Positions 7,878 through 56,975 are shown, counted from the first letter of the stretch. The stretch: DNA of 56,975 nucleotides from Octopus bimaculoides (GCF_001194135.2 NC_068986.1:55258480-55315454), one strand, 5' to 3'. The notes: generated by a model from the letters alone, not told the origin. Translations and numbers: made by a program.

Positions 7878-7956
<79 letters not shown>

Positions 7957-7965
7957 TAGATATAG

Positions 7966-8000
<35 letters not shown>

Positions 8001-22727: not shown

Positions 22728-22788
22728 TTAAGGGGTTCTAAACAAATGTACATATTAAAATAAAGTTATTCTTAATGTAAGTTAAAAT

Positions 22789-23369: not shown

Positions 23370-23464
23370 TGCCATTTAACAGATGATGACTTTGATATTG
23401 TTCTGAGAGCATGATTAATTTTCTATATTGCTACTTTACCACCGTCTGATGTACTTTTATGGCA
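23370..23464 (+). ncRNA. C/D snoRNA copy B (target unassigned)
   Basis: C 23383-9, D' 23403-6, C' 23411-7, D 23446-9; outer stem tgccat/atggca; D guide identical to copy A. Confidence 0.85.
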
Positions 23465-33371: not shown

Positions 33372-34225
33372 AATTCCATATATACATATGAACACCCATG
33401 TGCATTTCCTCACTCTCATCACAGCTAATGAGTTGTACCAATCTTCAAAATATGATATTGTTTTCAAATTTTGATACAAGGCCAGTAATTTCAGTGTAGT
33501 GGGTGAGTCAATTACATCAACCCCCATACTTAAATGGTACTTATTTTATCGACCACAAAAGGATGAAAGACAAAGTCAACTTTGGTGGAATTTGAACTCA
33601 GAATGTAAAGACAAACGAAATTATACTAATCATTTTTTCCAGCTTGCCACCGCTTTCTAGATATAAGTTTGGGGGAGGGGTTAAGTCAATTACATTGTGC
33701 CAATGTACTTATTTTATCAACTCTGAAAGGATGAAAGGCAAAGTCAACCTTGGAAGAATTTTAACCCAGAACATAAAGACAGATGAAATACCACTAAGCA
33801 TTTTGCTTAGCATGCTAACTATTCTACCAGCTCACACAGCCTTTCTTCTGATTGTAATATTAAAAAAGTAAATTTTAAGCAGCAAACTAGTGATTAGTTT
33901 TCTCTTCAAAACCTTATATAGTTAGTTGAATTACTGGCTGAATAAGTGCAGGTAAGCAGAGTCAATTGATTATGTGGCATGATTAACATTATAACTTCCC
34001 CAATGGATCTCTGTTCAGCATCTAATAAAATGTCAACAACTTATCAAAATAAAACATTTATCAACCAGATCCAGTTCATTACTGCTTATAAGCAAAACAA
34101 CATTTAAGCATTAAACTGTAATTGATATTCAACTATTAATTAGTAATTAAAGCATATATTACTTTGAAATAATAAATTTATTGCAACATAAACGATATCC
34201 ATTAATCTGTTTCAGGTTTTTCAGA

Positions 34226-35275
34226 ATGAATCTTGAAACCAGGCGGGACATTTTGCGTTGTTATTATGCATCAAGGAATTCTCCTGTTGCTGCCCTTCGT
34301 TTATACAAAAAAGAAAAGGGATTAAAGCATGACCCTTGTGATCCAACGACTGTTACTAAACTTGTTAAACGTTTTGAAGAAACTTACACTCTCATGGATA
34401 AGCCAAAATCTGGTCGCAAATCATTGGCGGATGAACGGAGAAGCTTGATTGAAGATGCAAAAACATATCTGCAAACAACATCCATACGTGCTATTGCTGC
34501 AGCTACTGGAATTCCAAAATCATCAGTTTACCGTTTACTGAGAAATGATCCCGAGTTGTATCCTTATAAAATGTCACTGGTAGAAGAGCTCAATGAGTGG
34601 GACAAACCCAAACGCCTTGTCTTTGCCAATTGGCTTCAGGAAAATGTCCATTTGATCTCACGCATTCTTTGGAGTGATGAAGCCCACTTTTATCTTGATG
34701 GGAGAATTATTCGCCATAACTGCAGAATCTGGAGTCGACACAAAACAGAAAATGATTTAGAACTGTCTTTGAATGGTCCCAGACTAACTCTGTGGATGGG
34801 ATTCACATCTGAATTTGCGCTGGAACCATTCATCTTTGACGAAAATGAACACATCAATGCTGATAATTATCTGGCTATGTTGCAACAGCATGTGCGACCT
34901 CAACTTGTTAGAAAAGGTAAACTTTCTCAGACAATTTTCATGCAAGATGATGCACCAGCACATTTTGCACCAGCCGTAAAAGATTTTCTCATTAACACTT
35001 TCACTGCGGAACGCGTGATTTCTCCTGGCTGTTCTAATGAATGGCCACCACGATCCCCTGACATAATACCAGTAGACTATTGGTTTTGGGGGTGTCTAAG
35101 ATCTAAAATTTTTCATAATAACTGTCCAACAACTCTGTTTGAAATGAAATGCAAAATCATAGAAGCATGTAATAATTTCACTATAGAAGACTTTTCAGCT
35201 GCTGTTGCTAATCTACCAAAGCGTGTTGAGCACTTAATACAAGCTGCAGGTGGGCATATTGATCATATTGTATAG
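34226..35275 (+). CDS. Intact Tc1/mariner DD41D(Visitor)-family transposase, 349 aa, DD42D spacing
   Basis: Uninterrupted ORF; HTH N-terminus; WSDEAHF, QDDAPAH, WPPRSPDIIPVDYWFWG; 42 residues counted between D2 and D3; no TIR found by eye. Confidence 0.9.
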   Translation: MNLETRRDILRCYYASRNSPVAALRLYKKEKGLKHDPCDPTTVTKLVKRFEETYTLMDKPKSGRKSLADERRSLIEDAKTYLQTTSIRAIAAATGIPKSSVYRLLRNDPELYPYKMSLVEELNEWDKPKRLVFANWLQENVHLISRILWSDEAHFYLDGRIIRHNCRIWSRHKTENDLELSLNGPRLTLWMGFTSEFALEPFIFDENEHINADNYLAMLQQHVRPQLVRKGKLSQTIFMQDDAPAHFAPAVKDFLINTFTAERVISPGCSNEWPPRSPDIIPVDYWFWGCLRSKIFHNNCPTTLFEMKCKIIEACNNFTIEDFSAAVANLPKRVEHLIQAAGGHIDHIV

Positions 35276-38599: not shown

Positions 38600-39050
38600 A
38601 AGAAAAAGTGAATGAAATAAATAGACATAATTACAAAGTAGCAAAAGTTCCCACAACTAGCCATAAGGTTAATTGATACACCATCAATGAAATGAATATG
38701 AAGTGTACAGTTTCAATAATTATGATAATGTACAGTGCAAGAAGGTTGACAGAAAAGACAAATATACAAGCAGATGAGTTTACTGAATATTTATTTTGCT
38801 GCTACTGTTTCATGAAGAGGCATGTGAGAAAAATGTTTTGCGTGAGATGAGTGGAATAAGTGGGTGACTGCTGAGAATTTAGTAACACCAGCAGGATTAC
38901 TTCAGTAATTTACTATCATCCAGTTGTCAGTAAGTGAAGTCATTGTGGGTAGCTGTCAGAGAAAAAGTAAAACAAGGTATCCAAAAATGTGGAATCAGTA
39001 ATACCATAGATAACACAAAAGATAACCTTCTCTATGAATATAGTGATGAC
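38600..39050 (+). mobile_element. pogo/Tigger transposase relic
   Basis: DEWNKWVTAENLVTPAG and IQKCGISNTIDNTKDNLLYEYSDD resemble the pogo DDE C-terminus. Confidence 0.55.
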
Positions 39051-39443
39051 CCAGAAATAAGTAGACAGCAATGATTATTATGTTGATAGATATTATATTT
39101 AGTAAACATTAAACCAACCATTTTCGTGCAGGTGACACGTAAAAGCACCCACTACACTCTCTGAGTGGTTGGCGTTAGGAAGGGCATCCAGCTGTAGAAA
39201 CTCTGCCAAATCAGACTGGAGCCTGGTGTTGCCATCCGGTTTCACCAGTCCTCAGTCAAATCGTCCAACCCATGCTAGCATGGAAAGCGGACGTTAAACG
39301 ATGATGATGATGATGATGAGAATCTTCAGCTAGTCATGATAGTCTTGAATAACATTTCATATTAAAGTAGAAATGTGAGGAAACTTTTTTAATGATTTTT
39401 TCTCTCTCTCATTTTTCCTCTGAATACAATAGGCTTGTAGGGT

Positions 39444-40270
39444 ATATGAGGTGGTATCGAAAAGTTCCCAGACTAGTTCTGCAGCATGCCAACTGATGGC
39501 AGCACACGGTTGTGTGCGCAGTGAGAGCTAGCAGTGACCTTTATGAAGGAGTGTGCTGAGTGACATCACTGTGATTACTTTGCAAGTTGTGAAATTTGTA
39601 TTTTTGTGATCTGTGTATGCTGTAGTTTGCAATTTTGTCGTAGTCAAGAAGCTGGAACAAAGAGCCAGTGTGAAATTTTGCTTTAAACTTGGGAAGTCTG
39701 CTACAGAGACATTGAGCATCCTTCGGTTATAAAGCAATGGGTCACACACAGTGTTTTGAGTGCCACAGGTGCTTTGAAAGCAGAAGAACATCCCTGGAAG
39801 ACCTGCCAAGAGTATCATCTCTGGAAATGTGGCATTGTGCATTGAGAATTCATCCCCCAGGGCCAGACCATCAATTGAGAGTTCTGTTGTAATGTTTTGA
39901 AACGTTTAAGGGAGAACATTTAGCGAAAGTGACCAGATATGTGGAACATAAAGAATTGGTTTCTTCATGACAACAATTGACACTATCACTGAGCTCTCCT
40001 CACTTGTAAGCTGCTTGCCAAAAACATGGCACCACTTCTGCATCCACCCTATTCACAAGATTTAGCACCTGCAAACTTCCATTTCTTCCCCAAGATGAAA
40101 ATGCAGCTCAAAGGTTGCTGTTTTAATGCCATTGTCGAGATCAAGATCCAATAGCAAAAGGTCTACAACTTGCTTACAGAAAATGACTTCCAGACTGGAT
40201 TCCAAAAGTGGCAGGAACACTGGGACTGGTGTATTGCTGCGTAAGGTGACCATTTCAAAGGAGATGATGT
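39444..40270 (+). mobile_element. Deleted mariner
   Basis: EQRASVKFCFKLGKSATET and HPPYSQDLAPANFHFFPKMK motifs. Confidence 0.85.
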
Positions 40271-42382
40271 TAAAACTGTTGTGATTTTAGTTTTGATCAC
40301 GTGATTTTGATTGTCTCAATTGCTGTTATTTGCCTGCAGTGCAGCTGTGCGAAGTTCTGTTCTGTTTGCAGCACATGTTCAGTGTTGGTTTTTAGTAAGT
40401 TGAAAATGTAGCAACTCGCTGCATAAAACTATTATTGCATTGAAGTTTGGTTTTGTTTACTCTTTGTATTGTAGATTGCTGTATTTTTAGCTGATTAAAA
40501 CCTTTTAAACTTAGATATTCCCGTTTGGGTTTATAACAAAAACTCAGGTAAATAAGTTATTTTTTTATTAAATATTATTAGTCCAGGAAATTTTTGATAC
40601 CTTTTTATACTTCTGGTCTTCACACTATGTAATGAAGAAGAGTGGTGTACACAGGTAGTTGGTGACTTAGCACTACCTCTGAAATACCTGCATGGGTAAT
40701 TAGAATGTAAAACAAACCTACACTAGTAGCCATGCTGTAAATGTTGTTACTGCACAACTAAATTATTCTAAATTAGATATTTAAAAAATATATATATCTT
40801 TGATAACATTAGTCAACAAAAAAATAAATAATAAATAGAAATGAAAGTTCTGGTGCCTTAAATATTAGACATCATTCATTCATACATCTTTGATAGTGTT
40901 ACTGCTTCTTACAAACATTACAGAAGAAGTCATATACATGGGACAGTAAAGACCCCCTTCAGTCATGACTGACCACGGGATTGCACCTAGAAAGTCCCTC
41001 TCCATGCCACTGATGTTATCCAAGGGAAAGGCAAAGGCTGATACAGCTCAGCACCAGTGGTGTAGGAACACATTTCTCCAGTTGAGTGAACTGGAGTAAC
41101 GTGAAACAAAGTGTCTTGCTCAAGAATTCAACATGCGACTCGTGTGTCTCCAGTGAAAGTTACATCATGCTACCCCACATCTTTGAACAGGGCCTTAGGT
41201 TTGATTCAGACGGCTATGTGAAGCCACCTGAATTGACATGGAATTAACCACAGTCTCTAGCAGCAATGTGAAGCCAATAGAACTGATACCAGACTGAGAA
41301 ACGAATACGTACTGGGGCAATTTGTTCGATGGAATCTCTCAAGGCGGTGCTTCACCATGACCGCATTCCAATGACTGAAACAAGTAAAATAACTGATGAC
41401 TTTTCAGGAATAGGGGGTTGGTTTATCTTTTTGGTAAACCTTTGATTAAAACTGGGATCCTTTCTGTTTGGTTTGTTACTATGGAAACAGGCATGAATGT
41501 GTCTCTGTGGCTTACGATTGGCTAGAATTATCCAAAATTTTCAAACTTGAATAGCTAATAACTCTATTTATTGATTTATGGCGAAAATGATTTTTAATGG
41601 CGTTGATTAGCCGATAAAAATATATCATTACACTGAATATGAATTCAATTTGAACAGAGATTGACCTTGGTAGCCCAAGAGAGAAGATCCTAAAACTGTT
41701 TACGACTCGTCCAATTTGTGAAATGAGCAGTAGGCGGACTAGGCTTTTCGAAGTTATTTTAAGAACTTTGTCATTAAAGGTAAAACGAAGGTGTTGCTAT
41801 TAAATCTAATAAACAGAAATAGAATGAAATACAGGTTATTAAACATTATCTTTTAACTGATCTTTGAGCATTAACATATTCGTTTCGCTTAGCTTCATTA
41901 CCATTCTCGCAGATATAGAAACTTTAAAGAAAGGTCCCCTTTTAATGAGAGAGGAAAACGTTATTTGAAAAATGTCGGTAGGAAGTGCACGGAAAGCTTA
42001 GACATAAGCTTCCAGTATAGTAAATTGTTGAGCTGGTTTCAATTAGCAGCTAAAACGAGTTCATTTTTAATTAATCGGTTAACATGCTCAAAGGTGAAAA
42101 CATTATACAATGACATTCCAACTTTTAGAAAAATTAAAAATCTTGCACAAAAGCAATACTCATTTATTTCCGTACAATTCATTAAAAAAAAAGACAAAAA
42201 AATATATTTGAAACATTAAACACGCGAGTATAATTTTATTCCAAACACATTGGTAATAATTTTATTATAATTATTATATTATAATTTTATTATTACCTAA
42301 TAAAATACTTAATTTTATTTAGTGATAATCAAGTCTCGTTTTAGCATTAACAGAGTCTCGTTTTACACGATATTTTCCACCC

Positions 42383-42458
42383 TATATATATTGAAAACTT
42401 CGTTGATTCCGCCTTTATTCTTCTGGGCTGACAGCAAGCGAATGTGTGGCAAGTAAGT
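42383..42458 (+). promoter_or_regulatory. Putative TATA + TOP start and exon 1 (about 42412-42452) of the snoRNA host gene
   Basis: TATATATA at 42383-90, cctttattcttc from 42412, caa|GTAAGT donor at 42453; YY1-like ATGGCGG near 42948. Confidence 0.6.
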
Positions 42459-43082
42459 TACTTATATTGAATTATTATCCGTTTGAAATTATACTGTTAC
42501 ATTTATTTATGTAGCAGAAATACCGCATTTATTGTATATGGTGGCACTGTCGTGATATAAAAAGGAAAAGCCAAAAAGACTAATTTGTCGTTTGACCATT
42601 TTTTTTTTAGTTTTTAATTGGTCGCATGTCTGTTGATAGATTTTAAAATAGTAAAAAGAATCTTAGGAAAACCTCAACGAATGTACCTTATCCTGTTATT
42701 TCATGACCTACATTTACGTAAATCTAGTGTTATAAATATCGTGTCGTGTTTGCAAAAGGAATATATATCGTTTATACTATTTAAATTTAGGACGGTAACT
42801 TTCAGAAAACACGTAAACCGTTGGAAGGAAGGATTGGTATAACTACCGTAAGGTTGTATCTATTTCTATGATTTTAAATAAAACTGATCTTCCATACATA
42901 GTAAAGGCAGGAAAAAAATTATTTTAAAAAACAGTAAGTGGCGCACATGGCGGAGACGTAATCCACCCGCTCACTTTTTTTTTCCCCCCCTAACAGAAAC
43001 CCACCTTTTCGGCTATGGAGATTCCGATTCTGAAAGAAAAAAAAAGAAGAAATTCGCGAAAATTGCAACTTCAAAATTTTCA

Positions 43083-44690
43083 GGTACTACTAAAGAGTGG
43101 TCCCCAACGTGCACCCGCGCTATAGCTAGTCGTGAGTAGTCGATCCCACAAGTGCGCGTGTTTCATTTCTAAAAATGAAAGTTCTGAATTGTGTTAAGTC
43201 CCCGATGTTCACATTGCCAGAAAGAGATGGCTTTGATAAAACATAAGTAAGGGAAGATATTTCGTTGCCCAACGCACAAAGCAGAAAAACAGTCGGTCCA
43301 GATGGACTATATGTAATCTGAACCTTCCCCCCCCTTTTTTACGGAATCCCACGTTTTTGGCTATGGAGATTCCGATTCTAAAAAAATTTTTTNNNNNNNN
43401 NNNNNNNNNNNNNNNNNNNNNNNNNNNNNNNNNNNNNNNNNNNNNNNNNNNNNNNNNNNNNNNNNNNNNNNNNNNNNNNNNNNNNNNNNNNNNNNNNNNN
43501 NNNNNNNNNNNNNNNNNNNNNNNNNNNNNNNNNNNNNNNNNNNNGGTTTTTATATAGATCCACAGGATAAACCTAAACCTAACCCTAGCACTAGTTTTGT
43601 GAGATTTGGCTGTTATTTCTAGCATGTAAATACCCTGCTTGGTGGGGAGGGGGGGAAATTGAAATTAAAAAAAAAATTTTTTTTCAGAATCGGAATCTCC
43701 ATAGCCTAAAACGTGGGATTCTGTAAAAAAAAAGGGGTGGGGGAAGGTTCAGATTACATATAGTCCGTCTCTACCAAAAAGTCTTCCTATCTGGAAAATT
43801 CCAAAATACGCCTGCAGGACTTTATTCTTGGTTGCATATTTATGGTCCCATAACACATTCGTATACACATCACCAAGTTGAAAATGTATGAAGTTAACAA
43901 AAACAGGTAGTGTCGATTTGTTTTTTTGGCACTATCATGCTATTAGCTGTCAGAAGTGAAAGTGCTCACTGCTAGTGAAGTATCTGTCTGCTTGCCTGTT
44001 GCTGGCCTGTCGATTCTTTGGCTACTGACAGCTAATACCATGACTGGCCGGAGCGAGCTATATGTCTGTCTGTCTCTCTATCTATCTATCTATTACTCGA
44101 AAGTTATTGGAACAAATTCGACACCTATATCCATGCGTTTGAAAACACAACACAGAGTATAAGGGTACTCGCGTCCGCGCTAGCTAGTCGTGAGTGGTCG
44201 ACCTATTATTTTTAAACTTAAAACTTCATTTGTTTTCTATTTTGATAAATTCTCTCTGTTGAAAATTATATTTTTATATTTTAAATAATTTGCAATTTCA
44301 GGAAATATGTTTTTATATTAAATTTGTGTTTTCTAATAAGGTGGACGAGTGATTGATAGATAGGTAGATAGTAGATAGATATCAGTAAGTAAGTAAGCCA
44401 ATAGCTCGCTCCGGCCAGTCATGGTATTAGCTGTCAGTAGCCAAAGAATCAACTCAAACCAGCAACAGGCAGGCAGACAGACAGACACTTCACTAGCAGT
44501 GAGCACTTTCACTTCTGACGGCTAATAGCATGATAGTGCCGTTTTTTTTTTTATTTACGTTGTTCAGAAAAAAAATTTAATTTAAAAAAGTTATTTACTT
44601 TGTTTTGATATATATTCAGCCGTAAAAGAGAGCACAGGTATTCATTTGCATACGCGTGCGCATTGGGGACCACTCTTCTTTAGTAGTACC
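43083..44690. mobile_element. 1.6-kb foldback non-autonomous element with nested inverted repeats
   Basis: TIR ggtactactaaaga..gtggtccccaa / ttggggaccac..tttagtagtacc; internal inverted pairs at about 43300-43392 / 43670-43770 and 43928-44060 / 44400-44540. Confidence 0.8.
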
Positions 44691-46617
44691 CGTGTTAACT
44701 ATCCATTCTAATTGTTGGAGCGGATACAATGGAATAACTGACATTGATGTTGAACCACGGTATTGCCATTTCAAAGTCAATCATTATGAAAGCTTAGTGG
44801 CTCCATTAACTGCACTTAGTTGAATGTTACTGGGAAAATGCAACACGCAGATTCAAGAGTATGATGAGAGTACGCAAATTTCTTCTTAGTACTTATTCTA
44901 TTGTCTTTTGCCGAACCGCTACTTTTCGGGGACATAAACACCAACATCGGTTGTCAAGCTGTGGTGGGGAGACAATATACGACTGGCTTTTTTAAGTTTC
45001 CATCGGTACTACTTAAGAAGAGTCGGGTCCACTCTTAAGTAATACCAATTTTTGTTTGCATATCCGTTTTCTCCACATTCCTTTACATTTAGTAGGCTTT
45101 TTTTTTTTTCGTGACCAGATCTTAAACTATATTGACTGGATACAAAGTGCAAGGGCAATAATCAGTGTATCTTCGGACAACTTAAAAGGTTTTTAATTCC
45201 AGATTTCTACCTGGAAGAGAAAATTACGACCTGCGGTCATTGCTGCCATGCCGGAGTCAGCGATTTAGAAATCACCAACTTTATAAATTTTCTAAGCTCT
45301 TGTACACAAAGTTCAGATGGAATTAAAAGCCTCTATCGGGAATGTTTGAACTGTACAAGGAGAAAAATCATTCAAACATGAGCCATCAAAAGGGAAACCT
45401 GAAGCGGTGTTGACTGATTTGTATTCTAGCAGTTTATTGGAACATTCAATAAAAAAAATTTGTAGTACTTTGTTGGTTATGGGAGACTGGGAAAATGACA
45501 CATGCAACATTGGCTATTTTAGTTAAAAGAATGTTTTATTTCTAAGTCAACAAATGCACACTTTAAGAGCCTTTTCTCAATCAATTTGGGTTTATGGTGT
45601 CTAACTGTGCTATACAAAATCTTTAGGAGCTTTCAAAGTTGTTGAGGACCGAGTCTGTCTCGATTCTTAGATTTTTGATAAACTCCAACATGTGGACTTT
45701 AATTGAATTATTCAGTATTCTGTTATTGCTGCTATATATTAGCAATAAAAGATAGGCGGTTTCAGATACATTAATGGTATCCTATCGGTTTCTAATCCAC
45801 TCTGCTGGTGGGTGCAATTGCCAGTGTCTTGAAGGTTACCAGGTTTTTGGAAGTGGCCAATTTCTTTGTGTCCAAGATTAGAGCAGTTGGTGACCTGTGC
45901 TGGAAATGTATTGATGAGAACTATGGCTGAGCAGTGGCTCTGAATTTTCATAACCATGATTGCCAATGTGTGTTTCCTATATCTCTTGGATTGAACCCAC
46001 TTGTCTGCTACATCTAGGATATTGTGAAGAGTTAAATGAACAGACTGACTCAAAATGCCAAGAACTTGAAAGCTGCCATTGTTGGTTTGGTTGGGAAGTT
46101 CGCTTCAGAACTGTGTTAAGGATTTAGTCCCTCTGAGTGGATGTTGTTGGCTGAAGTCCTGTACTGTAGCTGCAGGTTAATACCTTAAGAGTAAAATAGG
46201 TAGACATAGCACATTGTACCATCATTTTAACGTCCTTCCATGCTGGTATAGGTTGGACAGGAGCTGGCAAGTCAGAAGATTGTTGAGTTAATATTTCCTC
46301 TTGCTTTCATGTGCATTGGCTAATTGTAAACAAATGCATCTCTTTTCATGCAGACAGTATTGCTTGTTTGTAGTCAACTACAAAAGTATGTCTGACCCTA
46401 GATTCATTTGTGTATAGTTTTCTGTGTAACCATGTCCAATACCTTAGCTCAATACAAAGAGACCTACCATGTCAAAGGTCAACTTTCTTATTGTAAGTTA
46501 AATGGAAACAAAAAATTCAGCTTTCTAGCTCAATTAATAGCTAAGATATAACTTAGTTGTTGACTAATTAAAAAATGACACTTTTTTGAAATTTCAAAAG
46601 GTCATTACTCAGCAAAT

Positions 46618-47430
46618 ACAAGATGTCCCAAAAGTCACTGATGGGTTTCAATTTTTAATAACTTCCTTAATTTTACAAATGAAAGCATGAAATTTTGATA
46701 CAATATAAAGGACAGTATGGAAATGAATTAACCTTTTCCCTCTTTTTTCAGATTTTATGTGCTCACGGATCTGAGAAATTCATTATGGAAAAATACAGCA
46801 TTCAGCAATGCATCCAGGTGGTAAAATTCTTCTACCAAAATCAGGGGTCGATAATTCAGACCCAGGGAACATACTATCGACACAAATGAGAGATGCACCA
46901 AGTGAGAAAGTGATTAAAAATTTGATTCGTTTGAACAGTAGTAGCTGATCTTCCATGATCTGGGAATCCTTGCAATGTCAAGTGATGAGACAAGCAAGCA
47001 ATCCCATGACTAGCTCGGATTTTTTCTGGTGGGGATACCTGAAAGAGAGGGTTTATATCAAGGAACAGTAGCTGATCTGGGAGGCCTCGCAATGTCACGT
47101 GATGAGACATGCGAACAAGCCCGGATGTTTTCTTGTGGCGATACCTGAATGAGAGCATTTATGTCAACAAACCGGAGACCCTGGTGCAAATGAAGATCAG
47201 AGAAATTAGAAGTGGGGTCTGAAACTCTTGAGGATGTTATAGTGCAAGTTTTGGAAAGAGCACAGGCATGCCAAACCAAAAATGGCTGCCATTTAAAGTG
47301 GTCATTTCTCATGTGATGTAGTGGTATTGCAAAATTTGACTTGTGCATATTAATTGTCATTGTCCTTTGTTTGTAAAGATAAGGAAGTTATTAAAGATTG
47401 AAACCCATCAGTGACTTTTGGGACAATGTA
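46618..47430 (+). mobile_element. Deleted DD41D-family element
   Basis: TIR tgtcccaaaagtcactgatgggtttcaat at both ends; MEKYSIQQCIQVVKFFYQNQ fused to DFFWWGYLKERVY; deletion junction tandemly duplicated. Confidence 0.8.
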
Positions 47431-47631
47431 TTAGTCAGGTAAAAAAAATATTTCGTATTTAAAGGCTTATGAAGGCCATTAAAGCATGTAAAGTTTGAAT
47501 GAAATTGGTTTTGGTCACTTTTTTTTTTTTTTTTAATTTTTTTTTTTTTGCATCAATTTCGTACCCTGTAGTGAAGATAAACATTTCAAAATATTCTTAT
47601 TTGGTTTCAGTCAGTGTGGCATCCTGCTATT

Positions 47632-47703
47632 GTACTAATTGTGATGATTAGATATCGCCCCAGTCTGAATTGTGTGACTGAATCGATATAACTGATTTAG
47701 TAC
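47632..47703 (+). ncRNA. SNORD31: C/D snoRNA, SNORD31/snR67-like, copy 1
   Basis: Stem gtactaa/ttagtac; C 47641-7; guide tatcgccccagt; D' 47665-8; D 47692-5. Confidence 0.9.
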
Positions 47704-48586
47704 TTGACTTTATAAGGAATATATGGTAGTAGAAAATGGGATGCTCTTCCTATTCAGTAAAACATTTGGTAGTTAAAGCTACTGTGGACGTTTGCATTAT
47801 GGTCCATAGAATAAAGGTGTTAGTATTGCAAATTCATCTTGAAGGTTTCTTAATATTCCTATTATCAACACATGGAAATTGTAATTGCCATTATAAGTCA
47901 GCAATTGAGGTTTTTGCTTCACTAAAATTTAAAATTTTAAAGGCTTGTAACTTTTTCATTATTTTTTCTGTAAAAAGAATTTTAATATATATATATGCAC
48001 CAGCATGACCGCAGCCACTTGGCTGAAACCCATAAATAAAAAAATATATATATACACCAATCACCTGTGTATATCACATGTTTTAATGTCCACTTTTCCA
48101 TATTTGCATGGAGAGCTAGAATTCTTTGAGGCAAATCTCCTATGACTGGATGCCTTTTATGTCATCAGCTGTCACCTGTTTCTAAGCAAGGTAATATTTT
48201 TTCCCTATGGCAAGCTTGGAGATAAACATTTTGTATAATGACATTTGTATACAACTATTATGTAATGTGAAGATAAGTGCATATATATATACATGACTTG
48301 CATCTTTCGGTTTCCATCTGTCACATTCCCTCATGGCTTTCATTGGCCTAGGATGCCTGTGTTAAATATTCCAGTTAAACATTTAAAGTATTAAGTAGTT
48401 AAATGACTTTTGTCAAAAACTCATTGCTGTGGCCTGTGGCCCCTTTTATGTACCAAAGGAATCCATTACTCATTGTTTCAGGTTATACTCTCTCTTTTAT
48501 ATAAGGTGGCATCAAAGATGCTATTAGTTAAATCAAAATATTCCCGTAAAAACTAGATGTTTTCAAAGCAGTGTAAGATCTTGTAA

Positions 48587-48664
48587 GTGTACTTATTGTG
48601 ATGGATAAGATATCGCCCCAGTCTGAATTATCTGACTGAATCGATATCACTGATTATAGTACAC
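48587..48664 (+). ncRNA. SNORD31: SNORD31-like copy 2
   Basis: C GTGATGG; guide intact; D' 48623-6; D 48650-3; stem gtgtact/agtacac. Confidence 0.85.
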
Positions 48665-49464
48665 ATTACAGGAAGTATTACACTGGACAACAATTTGTTT
48701 TTTTAATTTTCTGTAGTGTGAGGGTTTTTTTTTTACTGATTCTGTCTTTGTGCTATTTCAAATCTGTAATTTGTTTTGCTTTCCATGCTCTAGTTTTCTT
48801 GCAATTTGAAGATTAACTTTTTATACGTTTATTGTTAAATTTGACATTGAGATACATATATCCTATTTAAAAAGAATTGCCAATTATTTTTACAGATCTG
48901 ATCAGGTCTTCAGGTAGATATAGATGTGTGAATAATCCTGATGGCTTTTACATACACACATGAAGCAGGTAAGAACAAATATGCAAGGCTTTTTTTCTTC
49001 AAGTTTAAAATAGGACATTGCTAGCATAATTTCGTTATATCTATATTCCACAACACATAAATACATAAAATCGGAACAGGCACAGACAAGAACAAGCACA
49101 CACACACAACCCATTAGTTTTCTTCTCATCCCATTTCAGCAGCTGTCATGGAGATATCCGAAGTGAACTGTCGAGTTATATCGAGGAATGCCACTATGTC
49201 TGGTTACTTTGCTTTTATTTGTCAAAAGCATGGTTTTGATAATTGAATGTTTGAGAAGGTGCTTGCTGCATACATTTAGTGCAACAGCAGTTTACTGATA
49301 AATTTCTTCGTAACACTTGTCTACATAGCAATACCATTTGTAACTTTGTTGAAGAAAGTGAAGAACTGGTAGTTGTAGTCCAAGCTTGTATTGTTGCAAA
49401 GGACATCTGTCATAGATTTCATCCATAATCTCTGCATTCCATATTGTGACTAGCATGCTATGAT

Positions 49465-49528
49465 TGTACTTAATGTGGTGAGTTAGATATTACCCTCAGT
49501 CTGAATTGCTGTAGCTGTTTATAGTACA
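49465..49528 (+). pseudogene. SNORD31-like copy 3, degenerate
   Basis: C GTGGTGA, mutated guide attaccctcagt, D box lost. Confidence 0.75.
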
Positions 49529-49982
49529 TGTTACAGGAAATATCAGCTCACATAGCATAGTCATGAAGTGTTTATAGTTTTCAATTAGACATTCAACCTG
49601 TTTGTAACTGCAGAAGTGTCTTGAAATATCTTGTGTGGGTAGGGTGCTGTTTTTGAGAATCGTTAACTTCGTGATTTCTAAAAGATTTGAAACTGGTGCT
49701 AATGTTTTAGTATTTAGGTTTCTGGGCACTACTTTAAATGCAGAGGTCTCAATACATCATTGTAAAGATATGAAGAGGAGGGTTAGTTTTTAGGGTGTCA
49801 TTACACATCCACACAGCATACATTTAAAATGTTCTGTATGTAATACCTGTATTTAAGTAGTACCAGTTTCTGTTTGTATTTTATTCCTTGACTGTGCTTT
49901 GGACATATTGAGAAAGATCACTGAAGTTGGTTTTCGATATTAGATTAATGACAAACTTTAAACTCTGGATGTTTTGAGGTTA

Positions 49983-50057
49983 GTATAGCTTTGTGATGAA
50001 CAAGATATCGCCCCAGTCTGAATTGTGTGACTGAGTTGATATAACTACATTTAGTAC
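49983..50057 (+). pseudogene. SNORD31-like copy 4, D box mutated
   Basis: C 49993-9 and guide intact; D box reads CTAC. Confidence 0.7.
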
Positions 50058-50214
50058 AAAGTTTAATGCTTTGAAATCTTGTACAGGAATGAGTCAGAAA
50101 GTTGTACAATTTTTTGTAAGAGACGCATTTTCCTAGGAAATTATTTGATATTTGGTACAGATATAAATGGCACATATGCTTTTGATCTTTAATTATTGAA
50201 TTTTTTTTTTTTTT

Positions 50215-52030
50215 TTACCTCTCATCTAAATGAATAAGTGGGACAATAAAAGAATTGGCTGTTTTTACTGGGAGTCCATCAGAAGCTAAGAGCTGTAATT
50301 GAGTTCCTTGTTGCTGAAGAAACTCTTGTTAACATTCACAGAAGACTAGAAAACGTTTCTAAAGATAAGGCTTTACAATATAGCAATGTGTGGAGATAGG
50401 CTCACTGATTAAGAAAACAGTTCAGAGAGAATTGAGAAAATTCAAGCTTAGCAGACATGTCTTGTAGTGGCCACCTATCAACTTCTGCTAACCAGGAAAA
50501 AACAGATGTTTTAATTAGTTGATAGATGCATCAACACCTGGAGATAGCCATGGCAGTTTTCACAGCACTATTGAATCACTTGGATATTCAAATGTGCCTG
50601 CTAGATACCAAAACAACCAGCAGATGAGCACAGGACTGAAAGTGTTAACTGTTGTGCTGAAATCCTTGAACTAAGTAAAAGAGATAAAAACTATTTTTCA
50701 CTTGGATTCATCGTTATGAACCAGAATGAAAGTGACAATCAATGGAATGGTATCATGCAATGTCAGCTGAAATAATCGTGCTGTCTTTTGGGGTGTTCAT
50801 AGTGTTAGTTGGGTCAATTTCTTACAAAGAGGAGAAACCATCAACTCTGAAGCATACATTTCGACCCTTAACCCTTTCGTTACTTAGCCGGCCGAAAAAT
50901 TTTTTGGTTCATAAGACTAACCCGGCCGTACCCATTGTTATTTAAATGTATATTTGAATCCAAATTTCGTTAGTAAATTCGTTCAAACACCTGATTTCAC
51001 TTTGCAAACAGTTGAGTTATTGTCTCTGACATTATTTGGCGTGATATTTGAACTCAGTGAATTTTGGAAGATTTTTTTCCACATATTTTGCGGCGTTAAT
51101 TTTTTTCAACAGAAGATATGGAGATATCGAAGAAAAGAATGAACGAGCTACAAAAGCACGTGGTGAACGATAATGAATCGGATATTTCTGTATCCGAAAC
51201 TGAAAGCAGTGAGGATGATTTTACACCAGAAAAAGATTTTAAAAATATTTTTATTAACAATTTTTCTGAGGAAACGGGGTCTACCCAGTCTTTCTCAGGA
51301 AGCGAAACCTTTAGACTTCTTTTTCATGCTTGTTTGAAATGATTACTGCGGAAACAAACCGTTAAGCAGAATGTAAACAAACCGGAAAAAAAAAGATAGT
51401 TTGTGGTTTCCTGCAACTGTAGATGAAATACAGGCATTTTTTGCCATAAATATTATTATGGGTATTATTAGACAATTACCCAGAATAACAAATTACTGGA
51501 GCGATCAGGAACCTTTTGCCGATGAATATATTTCCAGTATTATGAATGAGTACAATTCGTGAAGCTGAACCAATATTTACATGTGAGAGACACTAGCAGT
51601 ACCCCCCCCCCGTACGTAGAGAACTTAGAGACAAAAATTATGCAATAGAATTGATTAAGAACCCTTTCTTTAATTATGTTCCAAATATCACATTAATATG
51701 TTGATAAATAAAAAAGTTACAGGTGTTTAATGAGACTAGTCTAAATTCATGATTATTTTAGAATTTAGTTGAAACTCATGAGGGGTGTATTTTGGCCAGA
51801 AATATAGTAACGAAAGGGTTAAAAGGTTACAGCAAAACCTGCCGAATAGACTAAATCTGTTCAATGATGGGCCTAGTTCAAGCTTCAGAACAAGGGAAGC
51901 AATCACCTTTTTTTGAGTGGACAAATCTGTCCCTCCTTGCTCACATAGCTTTGCAGCTTCAGACTTCCATCTCTTTGGCCCAATAAAAGAGACACTGAGA
52001 GGTAAACATTATGGTGATGATCAAGGAGTC
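50215..52030 (+). mobile_element. mariner relic split by piggyBac
   Basis: RAVIEFLVAEE..., WIHRYEPE; ETINSEAYISTL|KRL reads through the TTAA; SDFHLFGPIKETLRG. Confidence 0.75.
50872..51818 (+). mobile_element. Deleted piggyBac, related subfamily
   Basis: TTAA 50868-71 and 51819-22; TIR CCCTTTCGTTAC. Confidence 0.88.
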
Positions 52031-52235
52031 ACTTGGATATTCAAATGTGCCTGCTAGATACCAAAACAACTAACAGATGAGCACAGGACTGAAAGTGTTA
52101 ACTGTTGTGCTGAAATCCTTGAACTATTGGATTCATCATTATGAACCAGAATGTTGTCATCAGCAACACCATCATTATCACCTTTGGTCATACCCTTCCC
52201 CAATTATATTGGGTTGTAACATTTTAACTTTATTG

Positions 52236-52308
52236 GACTAATTGTGATGAATAAGATATCGCCCCAGTCTGAATTGTGTGACTGAATCAATATAACTGAA
52301 TTTAGTAC
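52236..52308 (+). ncRNA. SNORD31: SNORD31-like copy 5
   Basis: C 52244-50, guide intact, D' 52269-72, D 52296-9. Confidence 0.88.
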
Positions 52309-52774
52309 ATGTTAACTATAGAAAGGTTTCACAGCAAGAGAAGACAAGTTATTGTAAAGAATTAGCTGTGTTACCACCCTGTGGAGTTTTATGAAGTTGG
52401 ATTATATGCCCTCATTCATAGGTGTAATACTGCCATTGAAAGACGTAACGACTGTTCAGAAGTAGGTATGTGAACCTGCGATAGATAGTTATAATAGTTG
52501 TACAATTTGTTTCATCGTGTTCTTATTTTTATATAATAAAACTAATTGCATTACTTTCCGACTCACTAATGGTTATAGATAAGGGTTGTCTCTATCTGAA
52601 TTGTTTTACTCAATTGTAATTGTTGACTGTACTGCCTAGTTATTATAATTTCAAGTTGCAATTACATTTGTAGGTATGCCTAGACACTGTATTGAATGAT
52701 AATTTTTTGGTTATTATTCTAAATGAGATCATTTTAACTCTCATGACTATATTTCTAGCTAAAAATACTCTTAA

Positions 52775-54095
52775 CCCTTTCGTTACCATATTTCTAACCA
52801 AATTACACCCCTTATGTGTTTCAATTAATTTCTAACATAATCATAAATTTAGGCTGGTTTCATTAAACAATAACTTTTTTATTTATCAACATATTAATGT
52901 GATTTTTGGAAGATAATTTAACAAAAGGTTCTATACCAAAATTTTTGTCACAAAGTGACTTTAATTACAGGTGAAAACAGGTAAATTCAACAAAATATAA
53001 AATTATTAAAATTTTTGTTCAAACATCGCTATAGAAAATGGGTTATTAGCTAATATTCAATTGGGTATACAACAAAATATTATAGAAGAGTTGTGCACAT
53101 TACTGGATTTATTACTGTCTCTTTTGCCAGTATAAAATTAAAATCCAGAGCAGTACCCAGTATTTGATTCACAAATCTTTTCCAAACTTTGATCCCCCAT
53201 TTTGTGTGCTTTCCTGGCATATACTGTTGAAAACGCACTCGGCCTTTATAGCCCACCATATCCTCATCTATAAACTGTTTTATATGTGCTTTGAACAGTC
53301 AATGAGGGGTCTTATTTTAAATAAGGGATCACAGTCTGGTTTTCNNNNNNNNNNNNNNNNNNNNNNNNNNNNNNNNNNNNNNNNNNNNNNNNNNNNNNNN
53401 NNNNNNNNNNNNNNNNNNNNNNNNNNNNNNNNNNNNNNNNNNNNNNNNNNNNNNNNNNNNNNNNNNNNNNNNNNNNNNNNNNNNNNNNNNNNNNNNNNNN
53501 NNNNNNNNNNNNNNNNNNNNNNNNNNNNNNNNNNNNNNNNNNNNNNNNNNNNNNNNNNNNNNNNNNNNNNNNNNNNNNNNNNNNNNNNNNNNNNNNNNNN
53601 NNNNNNNNNNNNNNNNNNNNNNNNNNNNNNNNNNNNNNNNNNNNNNNNNNNNNNNNNNNNNNNNNNNNNNNNNNNNNNNNNNNNNNNCGGAAAATGAAAC
53701 CTCAGATTCATTATCAAATACCACGTGCTTTTTTTTTCGGTTACAGAGTTAGATTTATCAAGGTCTTCAACGGAAAATCCTTCGAATTCTGACTCGCTGC
53801 TTGACAGAATAAAATTCGTATCCATTTTTTTTGTCAGGATTACAAATTTTGAAAACAACAGGAACAAATTTGGAAAAAAATCTCACAAAATTAAAAAAAC
53901 ACGTTGGTCGTCGTACAAAACTATAGCTGAACTGTTTACACAAATAATCACGTGTTTTCACGAATGTACTAACGAGATTTGCTCGGATATTCTCATTTAA
54001 ATATGAATAGGTGATTACAGGCGGTTTTGGGCGGCTTGGTCACATGAACCCAAATTTTTTTCCAGGCGGCTTTGGGCGGTTTGGTAACGAAAGGG
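52775..54095 (-). mobile_element. Deleted piggyBac, near-identical to 21249-22727
   Basis: TTAA 52771-4 and 54096-9; same TIR and internal sequence in reverse orientation. Confidence 0.92.
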
Positions 54096-54293
54096 TTAAT
54101 GCACTTTAGTTAATATAACTAAGAACTTAATGCTTGTGACATTTTTTTTTTCTTTTGAATATGGTGCTTGGAATAAAACATGTTTACAGTAATCTATTGT
54201 GAAATTATACGTTGTCATCAGCAACACCATCATTATCACCTTTGGTCATACCCTTCCCAAATTATATTGGGATGTAACATTTTAACTTTAATG

Positions 54294-54367
54294 GACTAAT
54301 TGTGATGAATAAGATATCACCCCAGTCTGAATTGTGTGACTGAATCGATTTAACTTGAATTTAGTAC
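54294..54367 (+). ncRNA. SNORD31-like copy 6, weakened
   Basis: Guide G>A (tatcaccccagt); D box reads CTTGA; lies in a roughly 190-bp block duplicated from copy 5. Confidence 0.65.
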
Positions 54368-55845
54368 ATGTTAACTATAGAACGGTTTCACAGCAAGAGA
54401 AGACAACAGGTATATTTAATATTATTTGGTATTTGGTCAGGTACATTCATTCTATAATTGGGAGTACTCTTAGTAGGTATCTTTGTGTTCAGGTTCGTGT
54501 CTTTGTTTTAGAACTGTAGTTTGAAATAAGGCTGCTAAGTCTTTGGGAATTTGAGAGGTAATTGGACCATTCATTTAGAACTGTTGCATTCAAATTATCT
54601 TTTTAAAGCTGAATACTTTCAAAAATTTTTGATTGTGCTCAAATCATTTTTCTTTTTAACTATAAAGTTTAGCTTTGTTCAAAAGAGATATTGTCCATAA
54701 ATTGATATTTTTTTAGTTTAAATTGTACTCGTGTGTCAGCATCTACATAGAGAATATAATTTAAATCTATTTTTGCAGATTCAAAAGACACTATGGCTTC
54801 TCCATGGAAAAGTTGCATGAATGCTCTGAATGAACATTGGAAACCTATTTCTGATTTTGGCTTATGTGGAGGCAGCAGATATGGTACTAGGAATGAGTCA
54901 AACCAAATAGACTGCATACTAGGGACAAAATATGACTCTGAAGAGTGTACCACTCAGCATAGACTAGTGATTAGTGATTTCAGACTACGAGATGCAAGAC
55001 AGGATAATGAAGGTAAGGATATTGACCAGATGTTGGTGCAATTGGGAGTTTCCTATGAGAAACTTCCTGTAAATATAGAAAGCAAAGAATATTAAGTTAT
55101 GAGAATCGAGCATTGATTTATTCAGCTGTACATTGTTGAAATGCTGGTGTTATCTGATAAGGTAGATCTTGTGCTCTTCACTTGCATAATTAATCAGCTT
55201 TTTAATGAAATTTTCCAGAGATATCTGTTTTCGATGGTATGTTACAATTACATTGGTAAAACTTCAGTTTGTAGTTCATAATTGTTTTCCTGAAAGATTT
55301 TAGAGTTTCTTGAATAAACTGATTAAAAGTGCCACAAAAAGTTATGGGTGCTTCATTTCCTTTCATTTTAGCTTTCAGCATTTAGAAAAAGATGCATGTC
55401 CATTTTAATTTAACAAGATAAAATGTATCTGGTAAATTTCATGCAAACATGCATTTAGTAAAGTCTGCCAGGTCAAAGTGAGCCACTACATAATTATTAT
55501 CCTCATCACTGGAAAATTTCATAAAAGAAATGTGTATTTCTATGAGAGTTATAGGGAAACAGCCATTAGGCTATACCAGTAATAGGCATGTTTGATGAGA
55601 TGGTGAAGAGAGCAAATTGGACTAGCTTAGGAAGAATGGCTTTTGCGTGTGTAGTTCTGTCATCAATAAGGTGAGTATACATGAACAATTTAGAGTTAAT
55701 GCCTCACATATATTTTAGACTAAATATACATATATGAAACTATTTCTTCTAGAAATGCTTGTATTCTTTTTATATATATATATATATTACAGTAGTTACA
55801 GTTTTTGGATTCAAAATATCCTAATATTGGATACTTGTAAATTAG

Positions 55846-55909
55846 TGTACTAATTGTGATGAATAAGATTGAATTGTGTGACTGAATCGATATAACTGAT
55901 TTTAGTACA
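55846..55909 (+). ncRNA. SNORD31-like copy 7, guide deleted
   Basis: C 55856-62, D 55896-9 and stem intact; the 12-nt atcgccccagtc is missing. Confidence 0.65.
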
Positions 55910-55919
55910 TGCTTATCTT

Positions 55920-56165
55920 TGATCTTTTACTTGCTTCAGTCATTAGACTTCAGCCATTCTGTGACACTGTATTGGTCAAGTGGTGATGAGGGAACGAACA
56001 AAGGCACATGCACACAATGGACTTTCAGTTTCTGTCTACCAAATCTTCTCACAAGGTTTTGCTCAACCCAAGACATTTAGAAGGCATTTGCCCATAGCGC
56101 CACACAATGGGACTGAACTCTGAACCATATGGTTGGGAAGCAAGCTTCTTACTACACAGCCATGC
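55920..56165 (-). mobile_element. tRNA-derived SINE
   Basis: Reverse complement of the same SINE head and tail seen at 15609-16690. Similar copies at about 1340-1435, 7160-7600, 8020-8160, 11780-11960 and 44880-44985. Confidence 0.75.
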
Positions 56166-56756
56166 CCATGGGCATTGGTTTCTCCCCCTCTGATAAGTCC
56201 TATCACGATTGATTTCTACTTTTCACCTTTCTTGAGTCCTAATTAAATGAACATGAGGCAAGGAGTTGATTTAACACTTTCATTACCATCTGTCTACTGC
56301 CTTCACTTAGTTTTGGAAGTAGGGAAGAATTTAGTAAAATAGCTGGTGTTAGGAATGAAAATTAACATGAAATTGTGATGGAAGGTTTTTTAGATAACTT
56401 TATAAAAAGAGGTTGACATTCTGGAGGCAGTCCCGAGTGGTGTCAAAAAGGGTTAATTCAATAAATGTGTTTGTGTTAAAAAGTTTGAAACTCTCAAGTT
56501 TTATACTTCACTGTCAGCTTTGTACACCAGTGATATTGGGATCTATTGATTCTGATTTGTAGAGCGTTTATGTATTTCATTCATCATGGAATTAAGCTTT
56601 TGTTTGTAATGTAGTGGACCTTACAAACTCTTTGAATTGAATTTTTTCAAGTGGGATACGTATTGATAGAAAACAGGCTCACTTGTTTTTGCACTTTGAA
56701 GTAGTGACAAACTTTTAAACTACAAATGCTCTCTGGTTAGTTTAGCATCTTGATAG

Positions 56757-56831
56757 TGTACTAAAGTGATGAACATGATATCCGCCCCAGTCTGAATTTT
56801 GTGACTGAGTTGATATAACTGATTTAGTACA
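56757..56831 (+). ncRNA. SNORD31: SNORD31-like copy 8
   Basis: C 56766-72; guide ccgccccagt (10 Watson-Crick pairs to ACUGGGGCGG); D' 56792-5; D 56819-22. Confidence 0.9.
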
Positions 56832-56975
56832 TAATTGCAATGGGAAATATTGTCAGCTCTTAGACTTGAGTTGATTTTATTTTATTTCACCAGGCACATA
56901 AAGTCTCTTAGCTTTGTCATTGGTATGCTATCCAGACATAGTTTTAATTTATAAAATCTGTTTAGGTTATTGAAA

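Follow-up and report, generated by a model that had tools for sequence, protein, structure and literature searches.

Tandem SNORD31 (U31/snR67) genes in and around the introns of a likely non-coding spliced host in Octopus bimaculoides

The stretch of Octopus bimaculoides DNA analysed here, referred to as the window, comprises 56,975 nucleotides (GCF_001194135.2 NC_068986.1:55258480-55315454) and was found to carry an array of eight SNORD31-like box C/D elements (c1 to c8), all on the + strand and contained within 9.2 kb. A preliminary description had claimed eight such elements, and each was present at the start position given there. A local nhmmer profile returned precisely eight matches in the window (c3 at E 0.004), and no ninth copy was found elsewhere in the 57 kb with either this profile or an 11-mer search. 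The 11-mer CCCCAGTCTGA occurred six times in the window, every time within a SNORD31 copy, and was never found on the opposite strand. Family membership was confirmed with the Rfam covariance model of SNORD31 (RF00089; curated gathering score 40 bits), a search that had been proposed earlier, in which five of the eight copies (c1, c5, c6, c2 and c8) scored above the gathering score (45-53 bits; E 1e-9 to 1e-7).

Copy c1 (47632-47703, +; Rfam 52.8 bits, match start 47634) is intact, with box C GUGAUGA, CUGA as both box D' and box D, the guide AUAUCGCCCCAGU and a terminal stem of 7 bp. Boxes and guide are also intact in c5 (52236-52308, +; 52.0 bits, match start 52238), and c8 (56757-56831, +; 45.4 bits, match start 56760) is intact with the guide UAUCCGCCCCAGU and a terminal stem of 9 bp. 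Copy c2 (48587-48664, +; 46.5 bits, match start 48592) is probably intact, since its guide, box D' and box D are unbroken and its terminal stem measures about 8 bp, the last A of box C being replaced by G (GUGAUGG). Copy c3 (49465-49528, +), which gave no Rfam match, is a pseudogene with box C GUGGUGA, a mutated guide (UAUUACCCUCAGU), a deletion of the C'-to-D segment and no box D. In c4 (49983-50057, +; 38.4 bits, E 1e-5, below the gathering score, match start 49985) the guide is unbroken, but box D has changed from CUGA to CUAC and the terminal stem has lost its 5' half, so that this copy is likely dead. Copy c6 (54294-54367, +; 46.7 bits, match start 54296) has a G to A change in the guide, giving one mismatch to the target, and a box D reading CUUGA, whereas c7 (55846-55909, +; 22.5 bits, below the gathering score, match start 55850) has lost the 12-13 nt containing guide and box D' but retains box C, box D and the stem. 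A full box C (RUGAUGA) and box D (CUGA) together with a terminal stem, which spans 7-9 bp among the copies, were thus found in c1, c5 and c8; c3, c4 and c6 lack this combination, and c2 departs from it in box C only. Judged by these features, three or at most four of the eight seem functional (c1, c5, c8 and probably c2), and c3, c4, c6 and c7 are decaying duplicates.

The P-loop of large-subunit (LSU) rRNA is universally conserved, and its methylated G equivalent to E. coli Gm2251 is the known target of U31/snR67. As had been claimed, the D' guide is complementary to ACUGGGGCGGUA of the LSU P-loop, the second G of this sequence lying opposite the fifth nucleotide counted from box D'. The pairing was scored against the universally conserved P-loop sequence, taken from established knowledge and PMC7600485. 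Copies c1, c2, c4 and c5 each form 12 pairs including one G-U, and c8 forms 10 Watson-Crick pairs. When an antisense stretch of 10 nt or more ahead of box D', with the Gm2251-equivalent G at the fifth position, was sought, c6 showed its single mismatch, that of c3 was degraded and that of c7 was deleted. The intact copies are therefore predicted to target the G equivalent to E. coli Gm2251, in keeping with U31/snR67 as the cytosolic counterpart of RlmB/Gm2251 (PMC7600485).

The mature copies are 79-94% identical in pairwise comparison, and with the exception of the c5/c6 pair their homology ends about 20 nt outside the mature sequence. This sharp drop in similarity implies that the RNA itself has been under selection or has been homogenised. 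Copy c6 is a recent duplicate of c5, the two sharing a 196-nt block of 96% identity with four differences within the snoRNA and four in 121 nt of flank. A locus of a related species (ENA ERZ21867824 ctg122342l, hereafter the related locus) likewise carries eight SNORD31 copies on one strand, upstream of which lie a TOP-like exon with GTAAGT at its end and an H/ACA element homologous to one in the octopus window. It differs in that seven copies are intact and one is decayed, compared with about half decayed in the octopus, in its spacing of 360-1000 nt, in its 11-bp terminal stems and in a C' box unlike that of the octopus.

Two public gene models, UniProt A0A0L8FQX2 and RefSeq LOC106881729 (predicted, spliced, + strand), run across the array. 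Their proteins (A0A0L8FQX2 and XP_014787700/702/703/XP_052824698) map to 48941-48968, 54779-55022 and 55940-55986, with canonical AG/GT at all mapped exon boundaries. Exon A (48896-48968, +) has the acceptor tttttacag, the model ATG at 48941 and the donor GCAG/GTAAGA, and the peptide MAFTYTHEA of both models maps to it at 100%. Exon B (54779-55022, +; acceptor ttttgcag, donor GAAG/GTAAGG) holds the bulk of an orphan ORF. Exon C of the RefSeq model (55940-55986, +; acceptor cttgcttcag, stop codon 55984-55986) encodes the C-terminus VIRLQPFCDTVLVKW* and overlaps a SINE-like repeat at 55914-56166; in the alternative model ending, it is replaced by a terminal exon beyond the window. Further copies of the SINE-like repeat occur elsewhere in the window. 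The spliced host proposed earlier is thus supported by two + strand models, although the annotated exons are not those previously deduced. A candidate 29-nt exon after c8 (56894-56922, +), proposed from an acceptor ttcaccag 71 nt after box D and a donor TTG/GTATGC, is absent from both public CDS models.

At the level of annotation, the copies c3 to c6 lie in one intron (48969-54778, 5.8 kb) and c7 lies in the next, so that the annotated exons do not give one snoRNA per intron at 60-90 nt from the acceptor. The intact c5 sits 2.5 kb from the 3' splice site of its annotated intron and c7 lies 40 nt from the acceptor of exon C, at odds with the expectation of a snoRNA about 70 nt upstream of each 3' splice site. 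Copies c1, c2 and c8 fall outside the annotated CDS range, and their intronic placement therefore hinges on unannotated UTR exons. The acceptor-like sites reported for c1, c2 and c8, at 62, 63 and 71 nt downstream of box D, respectively, were confirmed, but only those of c2 and c8 pass a strict polypyrimidine rule; as about 5% of random positions have an acceptor 55-80 nt downstream, compared with two of the eight copies, the enrichment is marginal.

Ribosomal-protein and other coding genes also host intronic snoRNAs, and LOC106881729 could be a true protein-coding gene with SNORD31 copies in its introns, an explanation in keeping with its public annotation as coding and with the canonical splice sites of a CDS called by two annotation pipelines at 95 or 102 aa. 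We nevertheless regard it as improbable. No relative of the 102-aa ORF was found among 5.8 billion proteins, where it formed one cluster containing O. bimaculoides only, and no Pfam domain was found in it. The two models differ in their C-termini, that of the RefSeq model being read from the SINE-like repeat, and the ORF is short, with a stop codon that would lie ahead of additional splice junctions should the exon after c8 be used. The four RefSeq protein accessions have identical sequence, which is compatible with transcript variants differing outside the CDS. An ORF without relatives fits the earlier proposal of a non-coding host, which stands against the public annotation, and makes a non-coding gene of the SNHG/Uhg type the likely host; the short ORF of LOC106881729 is most likely meaningless.

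Considerably less probable still is that the copies are transcribed independently, or processed from a polycistron, with the overlapping gene model incidental. Independent or polycistronic snoRNA genes are found in plants, in yeast and for many nematode snoRNAs, and such an origin would account for several copies sharing one annotated intron; the terminal stems of 7-9 bp, and of 11 bp at the related locus, can support splicing-independent processing, and about 25 nt upstream of the copies are weakly conserved. However, no common TATA- or PSE-like motif was found upstream of the copies, the intervals of 0.5-2.3 kb between them are large for a polycistron, and annotated exons with good splice sites alternate with the copies. 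Moreover, animal C/D snoRNAs are overwhelmingly intronic (PMC11014333).

A sequence-based candidate for the host's promoter and its first exon lies at 42383-42457 (+). A TATA-like run (42383-42393) is followed by the pyrimidine-rich CCTTTATTCTTCT at about 42412 and by a donor AA/GTAAGT at 42451/42452, and this composite, earlier described at 42383-42458, was confirmed and is the sole one of its kind on the + strand of the window. A transcription start near 42412 is plausible. A composite CCCTTTTC...AAA/GTAAGT lies at about 2405-2468 of the related locus, upstream of the same H/ACA element; the candidate first exons of the two species are not alignable with each other. In the octopus this element, an H/ACA-shaped snoRNA candidate recognised by fold, boxes and conservation at the related locus, occupies 45556-45693 (+) and consists of a 5' hairpin, an H box AUACAA at 45612, a 3' hairpin and an ACA at 45688 followed by 3 nt. 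It shows 83% identity over 60 nt with positions 3196-3254 of the related locus, where the surrounding DNA is unalignable. The consensus fold contains four compensatory pairs, and a single-sequence fold was also examined for the box positions. The candidate gave a weak SNORA12 match (22 bits), and positions 3194-3331 of the related locus matched SNORA62 (33 bits, E 0.003). Because this conserved H/ACA-shaped snoRNA shares the unit, the earlier view of a host devoted to one guide family was not upheld.

The irregular spacing of the copies is attributed to later transposon insertions. A transposon-like insert with 56-nt terminal inverted repeats, 95% complementary, lies at 46624-47425. A non-autonomous piggyBac-like element with TTAA ends (50868-51828, +), situated inside mariner-like debris (about 50300-52150), matches an element at 21243-22737 whose ORF matches Pfam DDE_Tnp_1_7 (E 2e-22), and a further piggyBac-like element (52766-54101, -) contains the second of two assembly gaps, the sequence to either side of this gap being collinear with 22732-21243 at 91-94% identity. 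Gap 1 (43393-43544) sits in the loop of an inverted repeat with arms at 43300-43392 and 43671-43770, within a nest of inverted-repeat and MITE-like sequence (42960-44690); continuity across it cannot be proven, and the annotated exons and snoRNA copies are untouched. Gap 2 (53345-53687) is spanned by a piggyBac ORF fragment. Its sides, 52770-53344 and 53688-54101, match 22732-22152 and 21644-21243 of the paralogue in the same window, respectively, and this collinearity supports continuity across the gap, for which about 507 nt would be expected to be missing compared with the 343 N written. Both gaps thus fall in transposon or inverted-repeat DNA without affecting any copy, and both were kept unchanged in the chromosome-level assembly (GCA_001194135.2 CM046606.1), to which the window is 100% identical. 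The suggestion that the array might continue past the window end was not borne out in that assembly, where the window is followed by a 4.7-kb gap, a repeat of its last 524 nt, which include c8, and then 3.8 kb without a further copy. That faulty assembly or dead, functionless retro-copies explain the array is hardly credible: decay is visible in four copies and the draft scaffold is gapped, with the c8-containing block repeated in the chromosome assembly, but the copies differ from one another and have distinct flanks and so are not collapsed or duplicated reads, none carries a poly(A) tail or target-site duplications, all lie on one strand at one locus, the intact copies retain all boxes and the guide, and a second species retains seven intact copies.

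Taken together, the locus is interpreted with considerable confidence as a local tandem family of SNORD31 (U31/snR67) genes of Octopus bimaculoides, lying within or close to introns of a likely non-coding spliced host. This interpretation builds on family membership, box and guide integrity, complementarity, exon-model mapping and an ORF without relatives, from which expression, processing, methylation, non-coding status and the start are inferred. The copies would not be independent genes but part of a + strand RNA polymerase II transcript, LOC106881729, which would also carry the H/ACA-type snoRNA upstream of the array, and would be released through splicing, debranching and exonucleolytic trimming. 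As a stable RNA of about 70 nt, an intact copy would bind the box C/D core proteins fibrillarin, NOP56, NOP58 and SNU13 via its C/D kink-turn and terminal stem and would base-pair with the P-loop through the 10-12 nt preceding box D', after which fibrillarin would 2'-O-methylate the second G. Copies c1, c5, c8 and probably c2 would be able to guide this methylation.

Human SNORD31 (U31) in SNHG1/UHG and yeast snR67 belong to the same Rfam family and share the guide core CGCCCCAGU, the D' box CUGA and the target G, and the octopus C' region UGUGACUGA matches the vertebrate SNORD31 consensus. The octopus guide carries U instead of C at one position, c8 excepted, giving the G-U pair with the target. 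As for human SNORD31, the predicted placement is within introns of a spliced host whose candidate start is rich in pyrimidines; however, SNHG1 holds eight different snoRNAs, each in its own intron and only one of them SNORD31, whereas the octopus locus holds one family eight times over, half decayed, with several copies in a single annotated intron. In mammals, SNORD115/SNORD116 and SNORD113/114 form many tandem single-family copies in intron-exon units repeated along a long non-coding host; these snoRNAs are orphan, imprinted and brain-enriched, with tens of near-identical units, unlike the octopus array with its canonical rRNA target, few copies, diverged flanks and transposon interruptions. 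The Drosophila Uhg lncRNA and ribosomal-protein hosts offer invertebrate examples of spliced, often non-coding hosts with many C/D snoRNAs, 42% of fly C/D snoRNAs having lncRNA hosts and 53% protein-coding hosts, with ribosomal-protein genes as the largest coding class (PMC11014333). Unlike Uhg, the octopus host carries a public annotation as coding and is known here from sequence and gene models.

An eight-copy SNORD31 array in host introns would be an ordinary arrangement for animals, and its family and target are already known. The related locus is linked to RPLP2 and to the same unassigned C/D snoRNA, termed X, as the octopus array. There, a single strand carries the array, X and RPLP2 coding exon 1 in succession within 8 kb, the array lying 2-5 kb upstream of that exon and interleaved with X, whereas the octopus array lies 21 kb downstream of RPLP2, which is also in the window. 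A speculative scenario, to which we attach little credence, is that the SNORD31 array and the H/ACA element once resided in a snoRNA-laden RPLP2 5' region, the state of the related locus being ancestral, and later became a separate TOP-driven octopus unit 21 kb away, where selection for P-loop methylation maintained a high copy number. If true, the locus would offer a traceable case of a ribosomal-protein gene giving rise, from its 5' part, to a non-coding snoRNA host gene.

All eight box C/D elements listed in the preliminary description were present in the window on the + strand, starting at 47632 (c1), 48587 (c2), 49465 (c3), 49983 (c4), 52236 (c5), 54294 (c6), 55846 (c7) and 56757 (c8), and the SNORD31 array they form is real and far beyond chance. 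The 11-mer CCCCAGTCTGA occurred six times in the window, each time within a SNORD31 copy and never on the opposite strand. When the Rfam SNORD31 covariance model (gathering score 40) was applied to the copies, the family assignment was borne out for five of the eight, c1 (52.8 bits), c5 (52.0 bits), c6 (46.7 bits), c2 (46.5 bits) and c8 (45.4 bits), with c4 (38.4 bits) and c7 (22.5 bits) below the gathering score and c3 giving no match. A search of the window with a profile of the well-preserved copies recovered the same eight, with c3 at E 0.004, and detected no extra decayed copies there, including the region upstream of the ribosomal protein gene RPLP2. In c1, c5 and c8, box C (GUGAUGA) and box D (CUGA) were accompanied by a terminal stem of 7-9 bp, the guide ended in CCCCAGU followed immediately by the D' box CUGA, and the C' region, UGUGACUGA, matched the vertebrate consensus exactly. 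The sole departure in c2 was the final base of box C (GUGAUGG). Box C and the guide were mutated in c3, which has also lost its C'-to-D segment; c4 carries CUAC instead of box D and lacks half of the terminal stem; c6 has CUUGA where box D is expected and a guide mismatched by a G-to-A change; and a deletion of 12-13 nt has taken the guide and D' from c7. Judged by these motifs, three or four copies appear functional, and four resemble decaying duplicates.

Duplication was recent in the case of c5 and c6, which share 196 nt at 96% identity. They differ at four positions in the 74 nt inside the snoRNA and at four in the 121 nt outside it, and three of the four internal changes fall in c6, consistent with relaxed constraint on that copy. 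Mature sequences of the older copies were 79-91% identical and homology stopped about 20 nt beyond them, which argues for selection or homogenisation on the RNA itself. The 5' portion of the guide could pair with the segment preceding box D to form an internal helix (octopus AUAUCG/CGAUAU; Rfam consensus UACC/GGUA) that shows one compensatory change, but this helix was not relied on, because L001, an RPLP2-bearing locus of a related species (ENA ERZ21867824 ctg122342l), folds in another register.

The guide AUAUCGCCCCAGU formed 12 base pairs with ACUGGGGCGGUA, including one G-U, and that of c8 formed 10 Watson-Crick pairs with the target. The fifth nucleotide upstream of D' lay opposite the second G of GGGG in ACUGGGGCGG, a residue of the universally conserved P-loop equivalent to E. 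coli G2251. The U31 (yeast snR67) snoRNP has been tabulated as the cytosolic counterpart of RlmB/Gm2251 and of the mitochondrial MRM1/Gm1145 (PMC7600485), and this listing, together with the guide complementarity, makes the P-loop G proposed earlier a sound predicted target, on grounds of family membership and base pairing.

A search of 5.8 billion proteins with a 100-aa ORF (54793-55095) gave a match to a single cluster, made up of UniProt A0A0L8FQX2 and the RefSeq 'uncharacterized protein LOC106881729' (four XP accessions with one sequence), both from Octopus bimaculoides. The chromosome locus of this gene, L009 (GCA_001194135.2 CM046606.1:55,297,420-55,324,465), was 100% identical to window positions 38941-56975, which places the window in O. 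bimaculoides; exact-sequence look-ups of the mariner ORF, 47736-48008, 54793-55095 and the UniProt protein (P0121) matched no record. The annotated + strand exons are exon A (48896-48968; ATG at 48941, donor GCAG/GTAAGA), exon B (54779-55022; acceptor ttttgcag/, donor GAAG/GTAAGG) and, in the RefSeq model, exon C (from 55940, stop codon 55984-55986); the UniProt model uses an alternative terminal exon past the window, from L009 position 23887 onwards, with AATAAA near L009 24118. Copies c3, c4, c5 and c6 all lie within the annotated intron 48969-54778; c7 occupies intron 55023-55939 and is separated from its acceptor by 40 nt. The annotated start codon lies downstream of both c1 and c2, and c8 comes after the RefSeq stop codon.

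The most likely reading is that the ORF is spurious and that the gene would be a non-coding host of the SNHG/Uhg type, because the ORF had no relatives outside O. bimaculoides among the 5.8 billion proteins and no Pfam domain, its C-terminus differs between the UniProt and RefSeq models, and the RefSeq version is read from a SINE-like repeat. The non-coding host put forward in the preliminary description therefore stood in part: spliced gene models span the array and the ORF is an orphan, but the exon layout proposed for it was unlike the annotated exons. Downstream of c1, c2 and c8, acceptor-like sites were indeed present at 62-71 nt, but at a frequency barely exceeding chance, and the annotated exons depart from the textbook layout, in which each intron carries a single snoRNA about 70 nt before its 3' splice site. 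A splice-site scan and repeat-unit alignment yielded no host exons, the flanks of the octopus copies being too diverged to define any. That LOC106881729 is a truly protein-coding host, as the public models have it, is possible but poorly supported given the same orphan ORF and conflicting ends. Independent or polycistronic transcription of the copies is unlikely, since annotated exons alternate with the copies and the upstream regions of the copies have no promoter motif in common. An assembly artefact was excluded for the eight copies by the mutual differences among them and their flanks.

Further upstream, a composite of a TATA-like run, CCTTTATTCTTCT and AA/GTAAGT was found at 42383-42457, with no second such composite on the + strand of the window. 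Between it and c1 lay an H/ACA-shaped candidate snoRNA (45556-45693, +; hairpin, AUACAA, hairpin, ACA plus 3 nt). Its 5' hairpin was 83% identical to sequence in L001, where the whole counterpart (3194-3331) matched SNORA62 at 33 bits, below the Rfam threshold, and the two elements have a common fold with four compensatory pairs. The earlier view of a host devoted to a single guide family was consequently abandoned: with this candidate in the same unit upstream of the array, the octopus host serves more than one family. L001 itself was reached through its RPLP2 exon, which at 78% identity was the nearest in the database, and its upstream order is a TOP-like CCCTTTTC...AAA/GTAAGT at ~2405-2468, the H/ACA element at 3194 and then the SNORD31 copies, seven above the Rfam threshold and one decayed, all on one strand at 4898-8127. 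That both species have a TOP-like exon, an H/ACA element and a SNORD31 array in this order gives the strongest available support to the putative start site, which we infer rather than assign because the candidate first exons of octopus and L001 could not be aligned. A conserved inter-unit block in L001, TTCAACAG/AAAATACAA, about 92 nt past box D, is acceptor-like; no donors matching it could be fixed, and no long ORF was found in L001.

In L001 the array comes right before RPLP2 coding exon 1 (position 10001). In the window, RPLP2 (ribosomal protein P2; 23782-23955 and 26212-26292, +) was ruled out as the host, its end being 21 kb upstream of the array. Its coding exon 1 begins one base past an acceptor, implying at least one non-coding exon upstream, and a donor, GATGA/GTAAGT, was found about 60 nt ahead of this exon, with a matching donor in L001 at ~9966. 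Two copies of another box C/D snoRNA, X (20567-20650 and ~23366-23452, +), lie upstream of the same exon, and in L001 X is interleaved with the SNORD31 copies (~4380-4478 and ~5610-5708). It has box C GAUGAUGA and guide GCUACUUUACCACCGU followed by CUGA, and its best Rfam match was snoZ101, at only 22.9 bits. Weak box C/D-like matches (sR11, 21.8 bits) were also seen in L001 on the + strand, just before RPLP2 coding exon 1 (9470-9534) and inside RPLP2 (11023-11087). No SNORD31 was found within 10 kb of RPLP2 in the four more distant loci (L005-L008), and RPLP2 was found in the fetched flanks of none of 120 guide-carrying metagenome contigs. It is rather improbable that the array once belonged to a snoRNA-rich 5' stretch of RPLP2, an arrangement that L001 may display, and later became a separate octopus host gene.

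Spacing between copies was 518-2253 nt, the long intervals being due to transposon and repeat insertions. Elements mapped in this region were a TIR-bounded element (46624-47425), mariner-like debris, a piggyBac-like element with TTAA ends (50868-51828), a second piggyBac-like element with TTAA ends (52766-54101) and a SINE-like repeat (55914-56166). A piggyBac-like paralogue with TTAA ends lies at 21243-22737, and its ORF fragment matched Pfam DDE_Tnp_1_7 (E 2e-22). Elsewhere in the window, an uninterrupted 364-aa Tc1/mariner-type ORF (34181-35275, +) gave weak helix-turn-helix and DDE_3 Pfam matches, and the element may be young; four tRNA-Phe(GAA) genes (545-617, 2266-2338 and 4811-4883, all -, and 6758-6830, +), three of them with equal scores, and a gap-abutting truncated tRNA match (3249-3310, -) lie within 7 kb.

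The second assembly gap (53345-53687) falls inside the piggyBac-like element at 52766-54101. Its left side was 94% identical to 22732-22152 and its right side 91% identical to 21644-21243 of the paralogue, in the order and orientation of a single continuous element, with 343 N written against about 507 nt expected to be missing. The first gap (43393-43544) lies within an inverted-repeat loop (arms 43300-43392 and 43671-43770), where continuity cannot be demonstrated. Both gaps are clear of the snoRNA copies and annotated exons and are unchanged in the chromosome-level assembly. After 56975 that assembly has 4693 N and then 524 nt identical to 56452-56975, including c8 (L009 18036-23252), probably a redundant scaffold end that would count c8 twice. 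The following 3.8 kb held the alternative terminal exon and no further SNORD31, and additional copies past the window could sit only in the 4693-N gap.

More than 120 metagenome contigs of various eukaryotes contained the guide TACCGCCCCAGTCTGA, mostly in single copy. About eight carried two to four same-strand SNORD31-type guides (four in L085, three in L065, two each in L048, L087, L127, L015, L041 and L062), so small tandem SNORD31 families recur outside octopus, and eight copies is at their high end. Tandem single-family snoRNA arrays in non-coding hosts are known in mammals. In flies, C/D snoRNAs typically reside in host lncRNAs (Uhg genes) and in ribosomal-protein genes (PMC11014333); nothing specific to cephalopod snoRNAs was found in the literature. 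Target, mechanism and host-gene arrangement are all textbook, and the current picture of snoRNA biology is unchanged. LOC106881729 is probably misannotated as protein-coding, and in two species a SNORD31 array is linked to RPLP2, which offers a small handle on the origin and movement of host genes. The array is a clear cephalopod, and thus invertebrate, case of a locally amplified, conserved rRNA-methylation guide, whose copies, ranging from intact to dead, illustrate the birth-and-death turnover of snoRNA paralogues within a host gene.
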